From: Entomortierella parvispora E1425
Taxonomy: Eukaryota > Fungi > Mortierellomycota
NCBI GenBank assembly: GCA_020891255.1
Contig: BQFW01000002.1
Span: 1,984,001-2,048,000 of the forward strand
Direction of reading: 5' to 3'
DNA: 64,000 nt
Below are positions 20,386-39,657 of the stretch, piece after piece (within the stretch, counting starts at the first letter, position 1; each line of letters starts with the position of its first letter). The notes under the pieces were generated by a model, which was not told the DNA's origin, did not search any database, and saw only the letters and a program-made list of their open reading frames with translations. The translations under genes and the position numbers were made by a program.

Positions 20386-23300
20386 TTAGATATATCCCGA
20401 TGGCGAGTATCCTCCTTCATTCTTGCCATCGCCATTGCCTCTACCTCTCGTGCTTCCTGAATTGGCTTGACTGGAGCCACGATCTGCGCTTCTATCGCTG
20501 TGTTGATTCTGCTTATTCTCTCGACGTGAATAATCGGGCGAGTCAGCTCCTAGTAAAGGTGTAAAGGCAACACCGGCTCCATTCCTGGATGTTGGCTGCT
20601 GTGAAGGTGACGGGGAAGGTGGACTACCTCGAAGAAGAGGTGAAGAAGGAGAGCTATAGGTCGCGTGGCTGTTCCTGTATCCGTTAGATCGCCTTTGTTG
20701 ATCCCGTTCTTGTTCTAAGCGGCTCTCCTCCATGGCCCGTTGAAGCTCATCCTCCTCTCTAGAACGAGACATCACGGCAGGATCGTAGTAAATTGGTGGT
20801 GGAGGCGATAGGCTCTGCATAGGATACGAGTGTTGCTGCGCTCCATGGGACGCGCCGTGGACTACCTCCACTCCATATGGAGGAGGGGAATATGGACCAG
20901 CGCCATTGGGGTTACTGGTAACGGCCCTAGCACCACCGTAGGTATAAGTGCCGCCTCTCAGAGGCCCTGCTCCTGGTGGTTTCTGCACCATCATTCTACG
21001 CTGTCGTCTGTTATCGAGGCAGCGAGCACAGCAACAACTCCAGATGCAGCAAAGAAGAATCAGGCCAATCAAACAGCCCACTGGAATCACGATGGCCAAA
21101 TGGTTCCTGGCCCAGTTCAAGACCCCCTTGATACCACTGCTGTATTTGCAATCTCCCTGTGAACAAGCGCCTCCAAAGCCACAGGGTGTACCATCGATAA
21201 AATAGGTTCCAGGAACTTGCATGCACGACAGTGAGTTACCGGAAGGATCATTGCACAGCAGATCGCAGGAGCTTGAAGCCCCGCAAGCCTTTGTGACGCC
21301 TGCCTGATCCTGTTGCTGGCATTGCAAATCACGGGAGGTGCAGACACCATTGGCACACTGAAGGCCAGTGACGTTTCCGGTTCCTTTGCATGGCGTTTCG
21401 TTCTCCAGACGAACATCGGGTGGGCAAGTCGCATTGGTGCCTGTGCAAACCTCCTGAACATCGCACTCTGAGATGGCTTGCCGACAGACCTGGCCAGCGG
21501 GTCTCAGCTGGCAATTCAAACAACAGCCGTCGTTCAAGTCATCACAGACAGCCGTTCCCTTGAGTTTGCAAGTCGTGCCATCACAACATGGATCCTGCGC
21601 ACAGTCATCCGCAGAGCCGCAATCACATTCTTCTCCTGCTTCTTTGAGTCCGTTGCCGCAGATGTTAGGCTGAGTGCTTACAGTGGTTTTAGTTCCTGGG
21701 GGTTGAAGACATTGGCCAGATGCACTCTGGATGGTATCACATATAGCACTGATACTGCAAGGAGAAAAGACTTTGGTCGCGACCTGTTCTGATGGGTTCA
21801 TGATAAACTGAGCCCCTGCGTCGCAAGTTGTGGCCGAAAGTGGACAACATTGACCATTCGGGTTGGGACAGAGCTGGCTAGTACAGTCATGAATGGCTCC
21901 AAAACCATGTCCAATCTCGTGCGCTACCACCATCCACTCGTTTGGGGTCACAGAAGAGATTCCAGTCCCGGCTGTATACTGAAGACCGGATCCTTTTCCT
22001 TGCTCTGAGGTCTTCATTTGACAGAGAGTCTTTGTCCAGGCAATGCCCACAATCGCGCCCGAGTTACATTTGGTCATCAAGTGCCAAAGACCTGCACCGT
22101 CACTGCTCTTTCCATCCTGTCCTCGCCAGAAACTAAAGTCACTCAGACGTTTGTCAATCGTATAGGCAGCCGAGCACTCTTGGTTCCATTCCATGCCTTT
22201 AACAGGTGTTGTGGGGCAATCGCTGGAGGTAATGTTAAGCGATATCACTCCCAGCGCGACGTTAAAGGTGCTTTCGTAAATTCCCGATGCAGTGTTAAAG
22301 TCAGCAAAAATCTGCTTTCGAGCCAGTGCCGGGCCACCATAATTGCTGACATATGTGCAATCTGCAGCCACGCCCTAGATACAAGAACCGAATACATGTC
22401 AATATTCTAGCAATTTATAAAACGCTTTAAGTCTTTTCCTTTGGACTTACCATGTAGTTGACCAGGCGATCAACAGGGCAGCCTTGGGGGACAGGATTGG
22501 GTCCTGCGACCTTGACTGCGACCTGACGTTTTGACAAGGGCGCCTTCAACACATCGGACCAGGAGGAACTCAAGTCAAGGTTACCACCATATCCTGAGAC
22601 GGGCAAGGTCAACGTCCTGTTTGGTGGGTAGTAGTATTCGAATGCATCAGTGTTGAATGGCTCTTGATTGACCAGACTGTGAGTCCCACAGGACTGTTGT
22701 TGGCCTTGAGGTTTTCCTTGATCGTCGCTCCTCCGCTTTTTCAACATGGCAGGTGTATTGTAAAGATCAGAGTCGCGATAAATGACAAGGCTCGACTGTG
22801 ACGAAGAAAAAGAGGAGGGAGTTGCATCGTCCGATCGTTTTTGTACTCGATAGTGCTGTCCTGTGTTGACATGGTAAACGTCCTCGCCGACCATGAATGC
22901 GCCCCGAAGAACCAGCCCATTGTTGAGCCTGTGTTGTCCACAAAACAGAGAAAATGAGAGATGAAATTAAAATCAGTTGGTCACAAAGATTAACACTGAG
23001 CAGAAAAACAACAGCGGTTTCTTGTTTTACCTGTCGGCGCCGCGGTTGACCGGGTTATCATCGTGCTCGATCATCATCCGCGCCCAGCCTTGCACACCCT
23101 CTTCGTGGAACATATGTTCAATCGTCCGCTTTTCCATCCGCGAGGTCGTCATGGCTCGGTTCCATTTACGGTCTGAATGGTATTGATCCTGGATAACAAC
23201 TCCTCGAAAGGCTTTGATTTCTTCCAGGTCCACATCCTCTCCCAGATTTGCCTCGGGATGAATGAAGTCATGGTTGGGCTCCAGGTACAAGTGAAACGTG

Positions 23301-23673: not shown

Positions 23674-25483
23674 TTGGACCTGTGGTGACCGAGGACTGAT
23701 CGCTACAATTGGAGAGTTGGCTTAATCAGAGAAGGGGGAAAAAAGAAAAATCGGGATGGATGGATGGTAGGGAGACAGAGAGAAAGAGAGGGAGAGAGAC
23801 AAGGAGTATAGGGAGATGGAGAGAAACAAAGACAAGAACAGGGGCGTCGCAGGCTTTGCTCTGTGTTTGCTGGTGGAGTGGCGCTGTGTCTTGTGGGTGG
23901 GTGCTGGCGCTGTTGTGTTGCTGTTCCAGCTGGGTGTGCAGGTGAAAGAGTGCGCGAATGGGAGCAATGCAGCGAATGAATGAACGTATGACGACCGATG
24001 CAGCTGATGCAAGAAGACCCAAGGGACGATGAGAACGAAGAAGGAATAAAGAGAGAGCAAGGCGAGAAGAGAAAGAAAGAAAGAGAGAGAGCAGACCCCG
24101 GCGGTTCCTTTTTCCTGTTCTCGTTCTTCTGCCCCTGTCCCTGGAAATAGAAGCGAGACCAACCTGGGCTTTTGGCCATTTTTTTTTTTTTTTTTTTTGG
24201 GATAGCACGCCTGCTGTCGCCGACTCGCTCCCTTGGACTGTCTATGACTCTATGTCTCGCCCTGTCGTGTCTCGAGTCTATCGCAGCTTTACCCGGGTCA
24301 CTCTCTTTCTCACTCCCGTTCGCTTGTATATCCTGCCATTGATACCGAGAGACCAGCTGGCCGTTGTTGACACACGGTTTCACACTTTGTCTCTAGATTG
24401 TCACAGTGTCGTCCTAGAGCCTCAGCACAGCCTCATCCTCATCTGCGTCTTTGGGATTGGGGGAGAAGACGAAAATAGGGGTGGCGCACCTGCCCGCCTG
24501 CCTTTCCACTTGCGCCAGAGACAACAAACATATCATGCTGTCATGTCGACCACGACGGTCGTCAAGTGCAGTCGATCAGAACAAGACACCTTGTTCTCTG
24601 TGTCTTTACGAAATAGCAACAACAATAACGACAACAGCCCTGGCTGGGTTCAATTGCGATTACGTCGTCTGCGATGAGAACAGATATTCTTCTCAAAGGT
24701 TCATCGGTAACAGTTATAAGCACCAGTTGGGGAGCTGCGTTATTTCCTAGACGACGCGTCCCGTGCCACTTTCTTTTCTTTTTGCTACGCAGCGGACGCA
24801 ACATGGAAAGTGGGGGGGGGGGGCTCTTGTCTGCTTCGCTGCCCTAATACAGCGACGGGCAATGACCCTGTTTGATCAGGGTTCGTTTAGCTCCGCTGGA
24901 GCATTTCACCGCATCGTCCAGTACAAAGCAGGAACACTTGACTTCTTACGAGAAAGACATATGCCGGGGCCAGACCTCATTGCAATGTCCTCGCCCAGAC
25001 TTTTTTCCTTGCGAAGCGAAAAATTTCACCGTTGGTCAGTCAAAGACAGAAAGAGTGGGAGCCTTGGGGATTTCTGCTCGGATTGTTCCTGACGTTCTTG
25101 CTGTTCGACGTAATTAAATTCCAAAACAGGTTACCATCTGCTGGGGACGCATCATGGCGATATCATCGCTTTGGATTCCACCTTGAGCGGACTTGGCAAG
25201 CAGAAGGTCAAGCAGGAAAGAGTCTCTCCGTTGCAACCGTCTTCTTTCAACTCATCTCTTTCCTCATTTCCTTCTCTTTCGCCTCATTCCTCACCTTTTT
25301 TTTTTTTTTTTTTGTCCATTCACTTGCGTTCTTGATAATTGTTCCGAGCCCACTGTCACTCGACATACCACGCGCCTAGAATTTCCTTATTGTTGCACTG
25401 CATCTCTTCCTTTCGTTAGTCTGCCTTTCCCTGCCTTTTGTTCTTTCCTTGCATCTTCAACCTCAGCACAATTCACTCTATCC

Positions 25484-27457
25484 ATGCCAACGTTATTGCA
25501 AGGATGGGCCGTGCCTACTCTGGCGGTGATCTCAGCCCTAGCAACCCTCATCTATCTCTCCCTCTTCAGCGAGCTCTATACCCTCAACAACGATGAAACG
25601 ATACGAAGACCTCATGACACAAATATCCACCACGACTACAAGCAGCCTCTATCACAACAGCAACAAGAGACAAAGAACCAACTGTTGACCACCACCACGA
25701 CTGTGCCCCAAGCCCAACTAACACCCACCAGCAGTCAGAATGATAATAACTACAAAGTTGCTCAACTCCATATCAACGCTTTTGTCTCATTCTGCAACAC
25801 ACCTACGACCAACTCTCCTCCTCTCGGCCCGGCCTTGTCCTCTTCAGCCCCAGAGCTCCACCAGACTGGGTTTTCATCGTACAGTGAGTGGATTGACTTT
25901 ACCAACAAAAAGAATTCCAAGAGCAATCGCGACGCCCAGCAATTTACCGAGGAATCAGTTGTTCGCCCTCTGTTTTTTGAACGTCCACCTCCCAAGTGGA
26001 TAGTAAATCTCACAGCCCTGGAGGAGCCTTGCGACCGCCTTATTCACACCTCAGCTCACTGCCTTGATGCTCTCTCCAAAGAGCATCAATATCTGGTTCC
26101 CTCTGTCGCTCCCTCAATCAAAAACTCGATCTCGTCGGTGCCTGAAAAGGAGGGCGAAACTCCAGTGAAGGACGACACGATAGACTTCCATGTCTTTTGG
26201 CGGGGTCCAATAACCGATAAACTGTCGCAGAATGCCCATGCGTTCTTGTTCACCCAGCCACTCAAACGAGCTCGGTTACATCTCTGGATCGACTCTGCAG
26301 ACCTCCCAGGCGGTGTCCCTGAAGACTATCTCCAGAACGAGTTTGCAGCACCTCTTGTTCAAGAGCCTTTAAGTCGATACATCACTATCCATGCATGGGA
26401 TCAGGCTGCTGAGCTCGCATATTCCTATGGAGATGGGGCTACTGAAGAGTCGCCAGAGAACGACAGTGATCGTGATAACGGTATCGAAGACAGCAACAAC
26501 AAAGACCAGCAGGGCCCTGCACCAAATTTCAGTAATGTGAAACCGGTCGCACTCTCGGATGAGGCTCGGTTCCTGATTCTAAATAGAAACGGGGGTATCT
26601 ACCTAGATGCAGATGTTATGCTGTTGAGAGACATGTCGCCCTTCTATGATTCCGGGGTGGAATTTGCCTACGAATGGAGCAACACTCGTATGTACAACAC
26701 TGCTATCCTGAGACTTTTTCCCGGATCTTCGGTTGCGAGAAGGATCTTGGATGGTGCCAAGGCCAGAGAGATCGAGATCATGGAGAAGAAACGATTACAG
26801 GCTCTCGCACAGAAGTCGGATCAGGCGGCGGTACTCAAATCAGACAGTTACAAAACGGCCTTTATCCAAACAAAGAAACCAAATGCTAGACCTCGACCCA
26901 TCAGTGCCAGCAACCAGTCAGGAACGACAGCGAGTCATCGGAAAGCACAGGCACTGTCCAAGCGAGGGGAGATGCGACCAGATGAGATCTATCACCCTGC
27001 TCGCCTGCGCAAGTACCTTCGACCTGAGGATGAAAAAATTGAAGGCAATGGATTGATCATGATGCCACCAGCCTTTTTTGACCCACTGTGGCTCCGCGTT
27101 GACCGTAAAGAGACCAAAAACACTGGCGACACTGACAAGATGATGGAGGACCTTTTCACATTCCCAGACGCATTCTCAGCCAGTGCGAACGCTGTTTGTC
27201 CTGCAGCGGTGCCTGTTAACCTTGGTGTCAGCACCAGTGATAATGACACGACTCTGAACAACAACACAAACGATCGCATCAAAGACTTCACGGCTGGCCC
27301 GGAGGTTTTCTTCATGGGTGCCTACGCTTACCACTGGCATAACAACTGGCTCACGCCTATTGAACCCCAGAGTTGGATGGGTCAGATGCGACAGGCCTTT
27401 GACGACTTTGTAGCGGGACGGCGACCGAACCTCTATGGCGAATGGTTCGGTATGTAA
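25484..27457 (+). CDS. Type II membrane glycosyltransferase, GT32/DXD sugar-binding family, apparently single exon
   Basis: N-terminal anchor WAVPTLAVISALATLIYLSLF; FHVFWRG; SDEARFLILNRNGGIYLDADVMLLRD (DXD); YAYHWHNNW. The upstream part of ORF 25193.. is low-complexity, so Met at 25484 was chosen as start. Confidence 0.85.
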   Translation: MPTLLQGWAVPTLAVISALATLIYLSLFSELYTLNNDETIRRPHDTNIHHDYKQPLSQQQQETKNQLLTTTTTVPQAQLTPTSSQNDNNYKVAQLHINAFVSFCNTPTTNSPPLGPALSSSAPELHQTGFSSYSEWIDFTNKKNSKSNRDAQQFTEESVVRPLFFERPPPKWIVNLTALEEPCDRLIHTSAHCLDALSKEHQYLVPSVAPSIKNSISSVPEKEGETPVKDDTIDFHVFWRGPITDKLSQNAHAFLFTQPLKRARLHLWIDSADLPGGVPEDYLQNEFAAPLVQEPLSRYITIHAWDQAAELAYSYGDGATEESPENDSDRDNGIEDSNNKDQQGPAPNFSNVKPVALSDEARFLILNRNGGIYLDADVMLLRDMSPFYDSGVEFAYEWSNTRMYNTAILRLFPGSSVARRILDGAKAREIEIMEKKRLQALAQKSDQAAVLKSDSYKTAFIQTKKPNARPRPISASNQSGTTASHRKAQALSKRGEMRPDEIYHPARLRKYLRPEDEKIEGNGLIMMPPAFFDPLWLRVDRKETKNTGDTDKMMEDLFTFPDAFSASANAVCPAAVPVNLGVSTSDNDTTLNNNTNDRIKDFTAGPEVFFMGAYAYHWHNNWLTPIEPQSWMGQMRQAFDDFVAGRRPNLYGEWFGM

Positions 27458-28415
27458 AACGTAAAAAAAAAGTTGCTTTTAATAAAAAGCCACTTCTATT
27501 TTTATTTTTTAATTTTATTCGAATAAAATACCAGGGCGCGTGTGAAGCGCGACATGCATGCTTCGCAATAGGTGCAAAGACGAGGGATTGATGGGCAGAG
27601 GGTAAGCATCAGTAGCGACGAATGGAGACAGGCACAGGGACAGAGACGAGAGTGGAGGGAGGGCGATCAGCAATGAGAGCAAGGCGGACTGCGGTAGGAA
27701 TTGCATGTAAGGAAGTGCAAGCGACCACCATGCGCCTTCCCCATTCCATGGCATGCGTTCATCCATGCCACACCTGGCACCCGCATGCATGCATGCACAT
27801 CCATCCTCGACGTGTCCTTTCTCGCTCCTTTCTCCCTCGAGAGAAAACAAAACAAAAGAAAGAAAAAAAAATCGCCCCCGCTCAGTCTTTGAATCTTCTT
27901 TGCTCAGTCGTCGGGAATATCCTTCCTTCTCGCCCATCCTCTTCTCTCTTCCTTTTCTTTTTCTTTTATCCCCTTTCCCTCTCACATCCATCCATCCGTC
28001 CCGTTCTATCATCCCATCTTTACGTTCTTTCTCCCTTTTTCTCTCTTTTCTTCATTCAATCTTTCTTTCTTTTTTTTTTTTCCATCCCTACGCACGCACG
28101 CACGCACACGCAGCTCTAGACCTTCATCCCTCTCCTCCGTCTCCGTCTCTCCTCTGCCCTTGAATCCATCCATCGCCGAACGTTATCGACATCGGATCCT
28201 CATTCTCCCTGCCTCCTTTTGCATCCAACCCCTCCCCCTTTTCTCCTGGGAATCGCACGCTCCATCGTCATTGACTATCCCCAGCCTATCCCATCTGTCC
28301 ACACGGCCGATCACAGCGTGTCTTCTAATCCATCGCGGCCCCCGTCTGCGCTTTTGTTAAACAGCTCACTTTTCCTTTTGGCACACGTAGCAGACACCAC
28401 AGACAGTCGTCCTTC

Positions 28416-31031
28416 ATGACCGGGGACTCTGACGACGGCACCCCGCGCCCAAGCTCGACCAGGGTGCACTCCACAAGGTAAACAGAGGGACCTTATTGCC
28501 CCCGATTCAACGGCGACGTATCTTTCTTCCTTCTACGCCGGGGATCCAACCAAACATCTCTTTCTGCTGAGCTTGTGCACGCGCGCCAACCTAGCATTCA
28601 CTGTCCTCCTATGCTGTCGAATAACCCAGAGCAACAAGACTAACAACTCTTCTGTGCAAAACATTCCTCTCGGGGGTTGTTGTTTTTACTCCCTTGATTC
28701 TCTCCAGGGACCAGACGGGAACGATCCGTGCGAGGACTAGAACGGGAGAATCGACCACGGCAACAAAAACAACAGAGGACCCAACAAAGACAACCACATC
28801 GTCCCTTTCTGCTTCGCTATCAGTTTTGCCATCTGCCGTCTCATCCACGTCCCTTTCAGATCAAGAAGTGCTCGAGCACTCCACAACACCGACAGACGGA
28901 GCAACATTGGCGGTGCATAACATGTCCTTGGCAGGATCTCCCACCGCTGCGCCATCCCGATCCACCACAGGCGTCCGAGGACCCATCGGGCCTCGACCAG
29001 GCGTATATCGACCCTGTGCTCGGTGTCGTAACAAAAAGACGAGATGTGATCGGTTAAAGCCATCATGTTCCAACTGCAAAAAGAATGGCCCGGACACTGT
29101 TTGCGTTTATGACAACGATGAGCCAACCGCGGGCGTTGTGACTGTGACGACTGCAGAAAGCGGGACGGACCAAGGCATGGGCTCTGCAGATGAAGATGGA
29201 CCACCTTTCCCGGACAGCAGCAGGTCAACGTCGTCATCATCTGTCAGCTCTTCGGCAACGGCAGGGTCAACTGCAACAACGGCCACGGTATTAGCATCAA
29301 AAACAGATGGGAGTAGTACGCCTGTTGAGGGAGCAGGATCTGGAAATGGAGCTGCTGTTAAGATCGCTGCACGGCCTAGCCCTACGCCTGTCACTCCCAC
29401 CAATGGAGGGGGCTCCTATGTCCGAAAACACGGATCGCCACTGCCAGAATGGGCCACCAAAAAGAACATCCCAGAAGAAGACCCCTCATCACAGCCGCCT
29501 CCCGCAAAGAAGTCTAAGCAAGGATCAAGTGTAAAAGGGACTACAAAGCCAAGCCCACTGCGTAGCTCCATCACCAACATCAACAGCAACACTCCACAAT
29601 CCGAGCAGTCACCATCTGCGGATGCAAAGGCCAAGAGCTCTTCTAGAAAAGAAACCTCACAGCCTGGCTCTGATGATTACATTGATATTGACTCGACAGA
29701 TGTCCCCGAAGGTTTGTGAAAAAACCCAGAAAACATCGGTGCTTTTTGCTCAATCACAGGTTTAGTTTTCATTTGGGATTCTCAGCCTTTTTTCTTGGCC
29801 CGTTTTAGACAAGGTGGTTACTGAGCTATCAGTAGCAAAGAGGAAAACATCGGTTGCAGAGGATCAGTTGCCACAACCGCCAGTCAGTAAAAGTCATCAC
29901 AAGAAGCATACCAAAGCGTCCTCAGGAGCCCTTTCCAACGGTGGCACGGGTCCCATGTCAGCATTTGGGTCGTCCAGGATCATGGTGGATCTGCCAACAG
30001 CGAGACCCCCGCCACCGTTTGTGATTGATGTGAACCAGCATGCTCGCAAATGGGGAAAATCAAAAACAATAGTCCTGACTCTAGGCGGTGAGATTTCTTT
30101 GCCACTTTGGACCTCAGGTATAAAAGACTAGCGAACATGAAGACTGTATGTATTCAGGATACCAGAAGAACAAAACAATTAACACCCCATTTCTATAGAT
30201 CAAGAGATGTTATTGAACGAACCACGTCCGTTTTATATGCAGAATGCATCCCTGTTCTCGACAGGATCTGGAGCAACAAATCTGGCGCGGATGGCTGCTT
30301 TTAATCAGATGGACTACTACAACCTTAGTAGCAATAACACTCCCGAGCGTGGAAATACCCCCGAAAGCGGTGAGCACTCCCCTTCCGGACCCACAGCATC
30401 CTCAGCCACAGCAGTCAACCCAGCGACGGGCAAATCTCATAAAAAGAAAAAGAGATCCTTGGATCACCCACCTGGATCACGGAGATCAAGGGAGGAAGGC
30501 TCTGAAGTGGTCCTTTCTGCCAAACGGAAACATGGGGCGGAACGGGGCTACGATGGCGATGATGCTGATCTGTCAAGTTCCCGGTCCACACCCACGCCAT
30601 CGGTCGTCTCTGTGGCGCCAACTCCAAAACCGAGAGCGATCCCGACTAGACCCCGAACTTTTCCTTGTTCGTTTGAAGGCTGTGGCAAATCATTCATGGA
30701 CAAATTTCATCTTCGTCGGCATGAGACCCGCCATGTGACTCAGGAAATTACCTGCGGAATCGATGGATGCACCAAAGCGTACGACTCTATTAGTACAATG
30801 AGGCGACACCAAAGTATGATTCATAAGAACAGGAAAAAGGAAGAGCTCTCTTCGTCATTGCTAAGCTCCACCAAAGTCCATGGCAATCATGGATCGTCAT
30901 CAGCAGGAGCAGCAACCCCGACCTCAATCTCAGCAACGAATGCTGGACAGGAGGAAGAGAACGAAGATGATGACGATGAAAGACTGGGATCCGTCACAGG
31001 ACAGACCATTATGGAAGAGATCGAGGTCTGA
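28416..31031 (+). CDS. Transcription factor with Zn(II)2Cys6 cluster, REPO/2W-hairpin-like motif and two C2H2 fingers; exons 28416-28477, 28708-29711, 29809-30117, 30199-31031
   Basis: CARCRNKKTRCDRLKPSCSNCKKNGPDTVC; RKWGKSKTIVLTLGGEISLPLWTS|DQE; CSFEGCGKSFMDKFHLRRHETRH and CGIDGCTKAYDSISTMRRHQSMIH. All three GT-AG introns are phase-consistent. Confidence 0.88.
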
Positions 31032-31522
31032 TCTCTCTCCTGTACTCTTTGCTCTTTTTACGTATTCCCCTTCCCTCCAAAAAAAGTCTTTACTTTTCTT
31101 GAAATCTCCTTTTCTTTTCTCCATCATCTAAACATAGACTTTGCCAACAATTGCTTCTTTCTTTCGTTCTTTCATTTGTTCCTTGTTTCCCACGATAGCA
31201 CCCTCAAGGCAGCAAGAGCACAAACATAATAAAATTAAATCAATTCGCGCTCTCCTTCTCATCCCATTTCGCCTCAATCCCTCAATCCCTATCTTTCATC
31301 CACAATGGGTTACCAGCGTTTGATTATTATTTTTTTTTTGCTTTTATTGTTCTTATCACAGCTTGTGGGATGAAGGAAAGTAAACTGTGTTCTCAAGCCG
31401 GAATAACCAGTGGCCTTTTCTCGCTCGCTCTCTGGTAATTCTTCCCGTCCTTGCATGTTGTCGTAGGAGGGGTGGTATCTTAATGGGATTATGTTCACGT
31501 CTTACAAGAGTTTTCTTTTCGT

Positions 31523-37432: not shown

Positions 37433-39333
37433 CTACATCATCATTTTATTGTAGTCGCGCTGGTCCTGCTGCATCTTCTCCACTACTCTGCGCTTCTTCT
37501 CGTAAAACTGCACGAGATCTAGATCCTGCTCTGGATCAACAACATCAGACGCTTCAGTTAGACGAGCCATAGCCTGCCACAGCATACCTCCCATGCCCGC
37601 GTCTGGTCCTTTAGCCTTGGATTCATAAGCGACTGCACCACAGATAGCTGCGCCTACGACAACAGCTGCGTCGCCCCCGCTTCCAGGCATTACCACGGGC
37701 AGTTGCATCACGTCTGCAAGAACTCTGACAAACACCTTATTGAGTGACAATCCTCCAGATATACAAATCGTCTCAATAGTGTAGCCCGAGTTGCAGAGTG
37801 CATCAACGATCTGACGAGTCCCTATTGCCAATGCCTGGATTGCCGCCAAATAGAGTACTGCCAGACCATCCACATTGTCGTTGTTGAGATCCAGTCCAGA
37901 AATTGAGCCTCTAATCGTTTCATCTGCGAAGGGCGATCTGTTACCGTGGTGGTCGGGTGTCATGTGAAAGCGCTTTGTAAGATAGGCGATGTTGGGTAAT
38001 TTTTGCCTGGTACGAATGGTTTCCAGGTGTTCATTGAGAAACTCGTAGATGGAGGTCTTAGGTATCAAACTCTGAGCTCTCTTCAGAGCCTCAGAGTAGG
38101 CTGGATGAGACTTTGTGAGATAGTCGATGAGTTGACCAGTCGACGATTGCCCTCCTTCTGCGACCCACATGTCAGGAAGCATCACGCCGTGAAAAGGTCC
38201 CCAAACCCCTAATAGGAATAAACAATGCGCGTCAAAGAACATGGTCCAATTTCTGTTTGTGACGCATGGCGCGTTCATTGTTCACACCCTGTCATGGTCA
38301 AGAATCAACCACGACTACAAGACATACCGTTGACAAAGATCGGTTTGTTGCTCATGGCAAGATGGCAGGATGATGTACCGCAAATCATAGATATTCTCTT
38401 ACTAGCCTCATCCACTGTTGGTTGCACCCCGTTCAACTTTGCGCCTAGGGTGCCAATAGCCCCTGCGTAAGCATCAATGACTGCACCGCCTACGGCGATC
38501 CCCGGTACAAGACCAAGCTCCTCTGCGGCCTTCTCTGTAAGTCCTCCGATGTGTTCTCCTGCAAAGTGAACACGTTGTTCCGAGTTGCCAATGCCACAAA
38601 GCTTTTGACAATCCTCATCTGCAATTTCACCGAGCCCAATCTGACGCAAAAAATCAGCGGGCCAGCCCTGCTTCCGATCCTTGGAGCCATCGCGTCCATC
38701 GGCCAAAGATTCCGGCCCCGCCTTGTAGCACCACTTGCACACGACTGAGCATCGACTGGGATAGTAATCGCCAGTGGCCTTCCAGGTCAGGAAATCGGGC
38801 AGATCAAAGAGTCGACCGATTTTCTGCCACTTTTCCTTTGGCATATTCTCCTGAAGCCAAAGCGTTTTAGGCAGCTCCATCTCGAGACTCATTGTCCCGC
38901 CAATATTTCTGAGGATCTCGTGGCGCGTCTCTGTGATGCGAATGGCCTGGTCCTTGGCGCGGTGGTCGCACCACATGATAATATTGCGGTTATGATCTTC
39001 AAAATCTGAGCTTGGCGAGATGGAGACTGGGCGCGCAAACTCGGGCGTGCCGCTTGTGTATGCGACCAAGGAGCAAGTGGCATCAAACCCGATACCTTTG
39101 ACCGAGCCTGGGTCGACACGTGCAGTGGCAAGGGTCGCCTTAACGGAGGTGCAGATGGCTGACCAAATCTCATCGCTAGACTGCTCGAAGTAATCAGGAG
39201 CGGGACGCGATGTCGAGTGTGGGGTGGAGTGGATGGCGAGCAGTTTTCCGGTGGCGGTAATGAGGGCAGCTCTGCTTGATCCCGAGCCGACATCGACACC
39301 GAGGAAGATGTCCGCAGCAGAGAGAGAGTCCAT
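37433..39333 (-). CDS. FGGY-family carbohydrate kinase (ribulokinase-like); one intron ~38322-38210
   Basis: LGVDVGSGSSRA, GIGFDATCSLV, IIMWCDHRA, DLPDFLTWKATG, ICGTSSCH, GVWGPF, EGGQSSTG, PDHHGNRSP and ISGGLSLN. Confidence 0.95.
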
Positions 39334-39657
39334 GCTGAGGATGACCGAGGAGAAGGGGCAGGAAGATAAAAGGGGGAATAAGGGAAGACACGCGTGGGAG
39401 AGAACAGAGAGACAGAGCGAGAAACTGACGTCCCCGTGCCAGAAAAATGGCAACCGTGTTTCTTTCTCTTCTCCTTTCGTTGCCCCTTGCATTCATTCTC
39501 TCTTCTCTCGCCCTCCAACTGCTTTGCGCTTCCCCTCCAACAACCCCTGGCAGGGCCGTTTGCTCTCTCCACCTCGGACAGGAAAAGCATTTCAGCCTCA
39601 TTGGCGCACAACAACAGAACACTTTGTCACATCCACACCGAGCTCCAATTTTGCAGA

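Follow-up and report, generated by a model that had tools for sequence, protein, structure and literature searches.

The 64,000-nucleotide stretch analysed here (positions 1,984,001 to 2,048,000 of contig BQFW01000002.1, assembly GCA_020891255.1, from the mortierellomycete soil fungus Entomortierella parvispora E1425; hereafter the window) contains a four-exon gene on the plus strand, at 28416-31031, that encodes a protein of 735 amino acids (aa). From N- to C-terminus this protein carries a Gal4-type Zn2Cys6 binuclear cluster, a hairpin with two tryptophans of the REPO (or 2W) type and a pair of C2H2 zinc fingers. Sequence comparison indicates that it is a real relative of the YY1/Pho family and not the bearer of a chance motif, a conclusion drawn because two independent modules, hairpin and finger pair, follow each other in the N-to-C order of YY1 and each have YY1 as their best match in the PDB. 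By analogy with animal, plant and yeast proteins, it is probably a YY1/Pho-family member of the Mortierellaceae that recruits INO80 to specific DNA via docking of the REPO hairpin on Arp4-actin. A first-pass annotation of the window had read the gene as a YY1/Pho-like factor fused to a fungal Zn cluster; the evidence given below supports the first half of this reading and modifies the second.

Hairpin, zinc fingers and Zn2Cys6 cluster

The hairpin motif, RKWGKSKTIVLTLGGEISLPLWTS continued by DQE, extends from 30045 (CGC AAA TGG) to 30206 and is cut by the intron at 30118-30198. Start and intron position agree with the first-pass annotation, in which the end had been set at 30207. The two tryptophans, W437 and W456, enclose 18 residues, a gap that is identical in YY1, in Pho and in both fungal types, and they are invariant in 22/22 and 24/24 aligned homologues, as would be expected if the annotated motif is genuine. 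Apart from the zinc modules, the block FVIDKNQKARKWGRSxxxxQTLGGEVxxPLWTSDQEMLLNEPRP belongs to the best-conserved segments of the protein. It includes a continuation past the intron, DQEMLLNEPRPFY, in which M, L, L and N are invariant or almost so in the homologues.

When a profile of the motif derived from 22 homologues was searched against 177,635 PDB sequences, the top match was the YY1 REPO peptide 4c5i_C (E 3.6e-6, 29.7 bits), the sequence of which is the one quoted for human YY1 in the first-pass annotation; the Pho spacer peptides (4C5H, 4C5E and 4C5G) came next with E-values from 4e-4 to 9e-4. YY1 was also the top match (E 2.5e-4) for a profile restricted to the lineage that lacks a Zn cluster, and it was matched at E 8e-5 by a profile of the Zn-cluster branch alone. 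An AlphaFold2 (AF2) model calculated on the motif alignment is a beta-hairpin (strands E17-26/E29-38) with both Trp residues located in strands and a predicted local distance difference test score (pLDDT) of 78-88. In a Foldseek comparison of this hairpin with 350,542 PDB chains, the top six were three Pho spacers and, at ranks 4-6 with weak E-values of 1.6-2.2, three Ies4 chains from the INO80 A-module of Chaetomium thermophilum (8a5d_X, 8a5p_X and 8a5q_X). Within the Swiss-Prot part of the AlphaFold database (AFDB), ranks 1-3 were occupied by Pho, YY1 and YY2, each at its REPO region, with Schizosaccharomyces pombe Ies4 at rank 18, and among the AFDB clusters ranks 3, 4, 5 and 11 were held by YY1/Pho, whilst a DUF1711 (Ies4) protein came in at rank 27. 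The structure library of the ESM Atlas returned YY1 in its first row and a PF08193 INO80_Ies4 cluster in its fourth. The feature search of the ESM Atlas gave weak matches only (scores <=0.46) to unrelated bacterial clusters when exon 3 served as query, and generic zinc-finger clusters when the homologue P0012 was used, the first Pho cluster being found at rank 12. The Pfam family PF08193 (INO80_Ies4) was matched neither by exon 3 (E<=1) nor by the homologues P0002, P0011 and P0036 (E<=0.01).

The hairpin model also matched two further proteins, i.e., Q8SQW0 (ECU11_0990 of Encephalitozoon cuniculi), a microsporidian C2H2 protein of 165 aa found at rank 5 with a probability of 0.91, and the AFDB entry A0A125PHR4 (371 aa; 42% identity over 31 residues, probability 0.98). 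Judged from the predicted structures, both may be leads to REPO-like motifs in other fungal lineages.

The second module that connects the protein with YY1 is the finger pair. A Pfam search of exon 4 detected zf-C2H2 (PF00096) with 28.5 bits against a cut-off of 25.2, and both fingers are of the CxxxxC type. A family profile of the pair had the YY1 finger domain as top PDB match (1UBD, chain 1ubd_C, E 2.3e-20), with one 38.5-bit stretch aligning the whole two-finger module with YY1 fingers 1-2. This alignment takes in the PRT that precedes the first Cys, the F-x-D in the first finger and the RHQ in the second, the last of these forming part of an invariant RRHQS signature that is shared with YY1 finger 2 (LKRHQ). 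When a single sequence was used as query for the fingers, TFIIIA ranked slightly above YY1, and GLI followed. Thus, the annotated C-terminal C2H2 fingers exist and correspond to those of YY1, but there are two of them and not the four of YY1.

The N-terminal Zn2Cys6 cluster is bona fide, as had been annotated. Exon 2 matched PF00172 (Zn_clus) with 35.7 bits, the cut-off being 21, the six cysteines are invariant in 24 homologues, and conservation of the cluster extends to the entire Zn-cluster branch. Searches for other domains were negative: exon 3 had zero Pfam matches, an NCBIfam search yielded no match, and no Pfam match to the fungal-specific middle homology domain was obtained for the window pieces or the homologues. 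The full-length model of P0002, the best full-length homologue, is disordered (mean pLDDT 44.5) except in the Zn cluster, hairpin and finger regions, and no coiled coil was seen in it. The 735-aa protein is a mostly disordered nuclear protein with three ordered islands, the Zn cluster, the REPO hairpin and the two-finger module. Short conserved blocks are scattered over the remainder, such as NLARMAxFNQxD and TPERGxTPxS between hairpin and fingers (30240-30420 and the homologues) and, in homologues, KPSPLRSSIT and SRIMxDLPTxxP upstream of the hairpin. The S/T-P sites that these blocks contain could be phosphorylation sites.

Gene structure and distribution in the Mortierellaceae

Reading of the region 28200-31300 with GT..AG splicing results in a single open frame over the four exons (Table 1). 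Upstream of the start codon, an in-frame stop is located at 28326, and the approximately 600 nucleotides from 27794 to 28416 are free of ATG. A search for RNA runs returned none for this DNA. Evidence for splicing is indirect and comes from the contigs of four runs filed under the same species label, which were compared with the gene; three of them, X4, X5 and X10, represent one sample of a relative that is about 86% identical to the window gene. A 1417-nucleotide contig of run X10 skips from 30115 to 30197, a gap of 81 nucleotides that is bordered by GT..AG and, at a cut offset of +2, corresponds exactly to 30118-30198, and it has at least 226 nucleotides on either side of the gap. The relative thus produces the form joined across intron 3, in accordance with the first-pass annotation, which had predicted that this intron interrupts the motif and is removed. 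The homologues likewise read PLWTSDQEMLLNEP uninterrupted over the junction. Runs X4 and X5 provide a contig of 3.7-3.9 kb that is colinear with the gene and carries a divergent insert of 89 nucleotides at the place of intron 3; this is the genomic form of the relative's gene.

A second X10 contig skips intron 1. The junction between exons 2 and 3 (29711/29809) is bridged by no contig, the neighbouring X10 contigs ending at the equivalent of the exon 2 donor, 29711, and starting at 29807. The acceptor of intron 2 was set at 29808/29809 because all homologues show ED(K/R)xVxxL over the exon 2-3 junction, for which the window gives EDKVVTELS, and because of the start of the X10 contig. An alternative acceptor at 29832/29833 was rejected, since only 29808/29809 yields the conserved sequence.

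Table 1. Exons, third intron and protein modules of the YY1-like gene, with window coordinates and the evidence for each
Feature	Position	Strand	Evidence
Exon 1 with start codon (first in-frame ATG)	28416..28477	+	X10 contig joins exon 1 to exon 2
Exon 2, low-complexity N-terminal region and Zn2Cys6 cluster	28708..29711	+	GT..AG borders, Pfam Zn_clus
Gal4-type Zn2Cys6 binuclear cluster, aa 124-153, C-x2-C-x6-C-x6-C-x2-C-x8-C	29015..29104	+	PF00172
Exon 3, terminating within the REPO hairpin	29809..30117	+	Acceptor backed by homologues and X10 contig
REPO/2W hairpin, first part, RKW...PLWTS, W437 and W456	30045..30117	+	Profile matches, AF2 hairpin, Trp invariance
Intron 3, 81 nucleotides, GTATAA...CTATAG, splits the REPO motif	30118..30198	+	Excised exactly in X10 contig
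Exon 4 up to stop codon	30199..31031	+	Open reading frame 30207-31031; homologues at E down to 1e-93
Post-intron continuation of the motif, DQEMLLNEPRPFY, family-specific conserved extension	30199..30240	+	Homologue alignment
C2H2 finger 1, CSFEGC...HETRH, aa 615-637	30666..30734	+	PF00096; pair aligned to YY1 fingers 1-2
C2H2 finger 2, CGIDGC...RRHQSMIH, aa 644-667	30753..30824	+	Pfam, finger-pair profile

A HMMER scan with exon 4 retrieved 25 proteins below E 1e-30, and the best full-length homologue, P0002 from Gryganskiella cystojenkinii (760 aa), is 66% identical. Named homologues all stem from the Mortierellaceae, namely from the genera Mortierella, Podila, Dissophora, Gamsiella, Entomortierella, Actinomortierella, Linnemannia, Haplosporangium, Modicella, Lunasporangiospora and Benniella, and the same holds true for all database matches other than generic zinc fingers. 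Among the best 150 representatives neither an orthologue from outside the Mortierellaceae nor YY1 was found, which does not show absence, and word-index searches aimed beyond the family, the reach of which is limited and does not imply absence elsewhere, returned Mortierellaceae only.

Phylogenetic analysis based on hairpin and fingers indicated three lineages, two Zn-cluster clades that each occur throughout the Mortierellaceae and an outgroup lineage without Zn cluster. The window protein groups with P0002 in one of the Zn-cluster clades (support 100/99). In members of the outgroup lineage (P0036, P0180 and P0182-P0187) the hairpin reads PRKWICKQVPVKTLGGEMMMPIWFSE, and the same two-finger module occurs twice, at separate places. 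Several species possess one gene per lineage, e.g., M. claussenii with P0011 and P0036. The first-pass annotation was thus right about the combination of a Zn cluster with a YY1/Pho-like factor; what it had taken for a single fusion gene is one of three paralogue lineages.

An apparent absence of the Zn cluster from many homologues was considered and rejected, as the public models concerned (P0013, P0157, P0173, P0008, P0169 and P0151) begin within the cluster or are mis-spliced there. Because the seemingly Zn-less members are faulty gene models, the three-domain architecture can be regarded as the rule in the Zn-cluster branch, and it is these models that conceal it in public annotation.

The region directly upstream of the gene (27500-28415) is pyrimidine- and purine-rich and of low complexity, with long overlapping open reading frames on both strands that resemble artefacts. 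The relative's transcript contig reaches about 800 nucleotides beyond 28400 in the upstream direction and thus points to a long 5' leader for the gene at 28416. Further upstream, the window contains a 754-aa open reading frame with a glycosyltransferase DXD sugar-binding region (25193-27457, plus strand), the direct neighbour of the YY1-like gene, and on the minus strand (20386-22371) an open reading frame for an ADAM-like protein that combines a reprolysin-type M12B metalloprotease domain with a disintegrin domain. On the other side, an FGGY carbohydrate kinase is distributed over two minus-strand reading frames at 37433-39492, one with the N-terminal domain (38305-39492) and one with the C-terminal domain (37433-38278), that are presumably one gene with an intron.

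Proposed recruitment of INO80 and alternative roles

The REPO/2W hairpin is established as the element that anchors YY1 and Ies4 on Arp4-actin, its two Trp residues clamping a Gly-Pro corner of actin (PMC9733932), and the REPO segment of YY1 in addition binds Polycomb proteins with four MBT repeats (4MBT; PMC3828522). The background given in the first-pass annotation agrees with the literature. In plants, AtYY1 associates with INO80, likely by means of the REPO domain (PMC10146089), in Neurospora IEC-1 is found in co-precipitates with INO80 and brings the remodeller to the frq gene (PMC5406019), and Iec5 from S. pombe contains a YY1/Pho-like region with an essential Trp (PMC7896557). Since such animal, plant and yeast precedents bracket the family, site-specific recruitment of INO80 is the most likely role of the window protein. 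One or both of the zinc modules would read specific DNA sites, the two Trp residues of the hairpin would clamp the Arp4-actin pair of the INO80 A-module, and this docking would tether the remodeller to those sites, as YY1, AtYY1 and IEC-1/Iec1 do in animals, plants and Dikarya, respectively. We infer that the Zn cluster and the fingers both bind DNA.

Several points weigh against this role. The DNA specificity of YY1 is not transferable, because two fingers are present here instead of four. The hairpin by itself does not specify INO80, because other 2W clients sit in other complexes, Swc4/DMAP1, Rtt102 and BCL7 being examples of such hairpins and SWR1/NuA4 and SWI/SNF-type assemblies being the complexes in question (PMC9733932). 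Three paralogues and a possible Ies4 would compete for a single docking site. On the side of the evidence, the Foldseek E-values of 0.1-2 are individually non-significant, the hairpin being too small for a significant one, and only the ranking is informative; moreover, a single-sequence phmmer search of the PDB with exon 3 missed YY1 and gave noise only (XPA and LpqH, E>0.1).

That 2W clients occur in several complexes, and that the REPO segment of YY1 binds 4MBT proteins via an overlapping surface (PMC9733932, PMC3828522), would also fit a true REPO homologue that has a partner other than INO80, either Arp4-actin in SWR1, NuA4 or SWI/SNF-type complexes or a chromatin reader as in the Pho-Sfmbt pair. 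We consider this unlikely, though well above a negligible chance. When the residues of Pho that contact the 4MBT protein are mapped onto the family (PMC3828522), positions I155, M158, F162, V164, M166 and W167 stay hydrophobic in the window protein, and the paralogue without Zn cluster retains K151, V153 and K156. On the other hand, the salt-bridge residue E159 is replaced by Gly in every family member and the Zn-cluster branch has lost K151, and the picture derived from these alignments is thus mixed, with a retained hydrophobic face. MBT-repeat proteins are, as far as is known, essentially confined to animals, which counts against a 4MBT partner in this fungus. The link between REPO and INO80, in contrast, is common to animals, plants and yeasts (PMC9733932, PMC10146089, PMC7896557). 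Quite improbable, in our view, is a constitutive equivalent of Ies4, i.e., a subunit with a structural role in completing the INO80 A-module and not a gene-specific recruiter. It is true that Kunert et al. argue for YY1 as the counterpart of fungal Ies4 (PMC9733932) and that Ies4 is among the best structural matches of the hairpin model in both the PDB and the ESM Atlas; however, the Pfam Ies4 family is not matched, the protein bears two DNA-binding modules, and three paralogues per genome are more in keeping with adaptors for alternative targeting than with a single fixed subunit.

The reading according to which the likeness to REPO arose by chance or convergence, the segment being a pair of WD-repeat-like strands or else a generic hairpin of an ordinary dual zinc-finger factor and having no part in docking, is disfavoured to the point that we give it hardly any weight. 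It could draw on the failure of the lone exon 3 sequence to reach YY1 and on designed WD-repeat proteins that the profile of the Zn-cluster branch also gathers. These WD rows, however, are sums over seven to eight repeats, each of which contributes about 3 bits and fails to pass individually, and they span only half of the motif, and a WD-repeat assignment was rejected on these grounds. YY1 and Pho are the only matches made in a single stretch, with identical Trp spacing; the fingers as an independent module likewise match YY1 best, and the motif is one of the most conserved segments outside the zinc modules.

With regard to the origin of the family, we put forward a scenario tentatively, as a possibility that may well prove wrong. 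The Mortierellaceae might have kept an ancestral, unsplit YY1 design, which in Dikarya has been divided between Iec1 (fingers) and Iec5 and/or Ies4 (hairpin). This design would then have been tripled, two copies acquiring a Zn2Cys6 cluster, so that these recruiters of remodellers would use two unrelated zinc modules for reading DNA, and the third a duplicated finger pair; the products would serve as alternative targeting adaptors that compete for the one Arp4-actin site of INO80. Whatever their history, three paralogues with different DNA-reading modules and one common docking motif constitute a natural experiment, and they render testable the notion that hairpin clients can replace one another as adaptors that target remodellers.

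Comparison with YY1, Ies4 and Gal4-type factors

The window protein resembles YY1, Pho and AtYY1 in the W-x18-W hairpin with its TL-G-E core and the S-(S/D)-(D/E) past the second Trp, as well as in the position of this hairpin N-terminal to CxxxxC C2H2 fingers, the pair of which aligns with YY1 fingers 1-2. With YY1 and Pho it also has in common that short ordered modules are placed on long disordered linkers (PMC3828522). It differs from all three in having two fingers where they possess four or five, in the additional N-terminal Zn2Cys6 cluster and the post-hairpin extension DQEMLLNEPRP, in that none of the acidic, His- or GA-rich regions of YY1 were noted, and in the existence of three paralogues, so far from one fungal family only. 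The four tandem fingers of YY1 are replaced by two in the window protein and by two separated pairs in the paralogue without Zn cluster. As four tandem fingers are absent and the Pfam Ies4 family is not matched, we regard the protein as a variant within the YY1/Pho kind and do not consider it orthologous to YY1 or Ies4.

Among fungi, Iec1 and Iec5 of S. pombe and IEC-1 of Neurospora are regarded as counterparts of YY1 (PMC7896557, PMC5406019); the first-pass annotation did not name them. Compared by published description, Iec1 and IEC-1, which bind or recruit INO80, resemble the window protein in possessing C2H2 fingers (PMC7896557, PMC5406019), while Iec5 does so in its YY1/Pho-like stretch with an essential Trp (PMC7896557). 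In S. pombe, however, fingers and REPO-like stretch reside on two polypeptides, whereas they are united on one in the window protein as in animals and plants, and a Zn2Cys6 cluster is mentioned in neither PMC7896557 nor PMC5406019. Ies4 (PF08193) is alike in its two-Trp beta-hairpin, which in the window protein is a predicted one, to the extent that C. thermophilum chains are among the six best structural matches in the PDB, and unlike in that it lacks a DNA-binding domain (PMC9733932) where the window protein has two; by sequence, PF08193 is not matched. From Gal4-type Zn2Cys6 factors, with which it shares the canonical six-Cys binuclear cluster near the N-terminus, the protein is distinguished by the lack of a middle homology domain detectable with Pfam and of a coiled coil in the model, and by the pairing of the cluster with C2H2 fingers and a REPO hairpin.

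A fungal zinc-finger factor that recruits INO80 is not new in principle, because Iec1, Iec5 and IEC-1 are already known. As described by Kunert et al., the 2W client of fungal INO80 is Ies4, which has no DNA-binding domain, and the DNA-binding clients are YY1 and Pho (PMC9733932). In the literature we found no description of YY1-like proteins in Mortierellomycota or of a Zn2Cys6-REPO-C2H2 architecture. What seems to be undescribed is the presence of hairpin and fingers on a single fungal polypeptide, the added Zn2Cys6 cluster and the Mortierellaceae family of three paralogues. True REPO-plus-finger proteins in a fungal lineage would thereby provide a link between YY1, Pho and AtYY1 on the one side and Iec1, Iec5 and Ies4 of the yeasts on the other.

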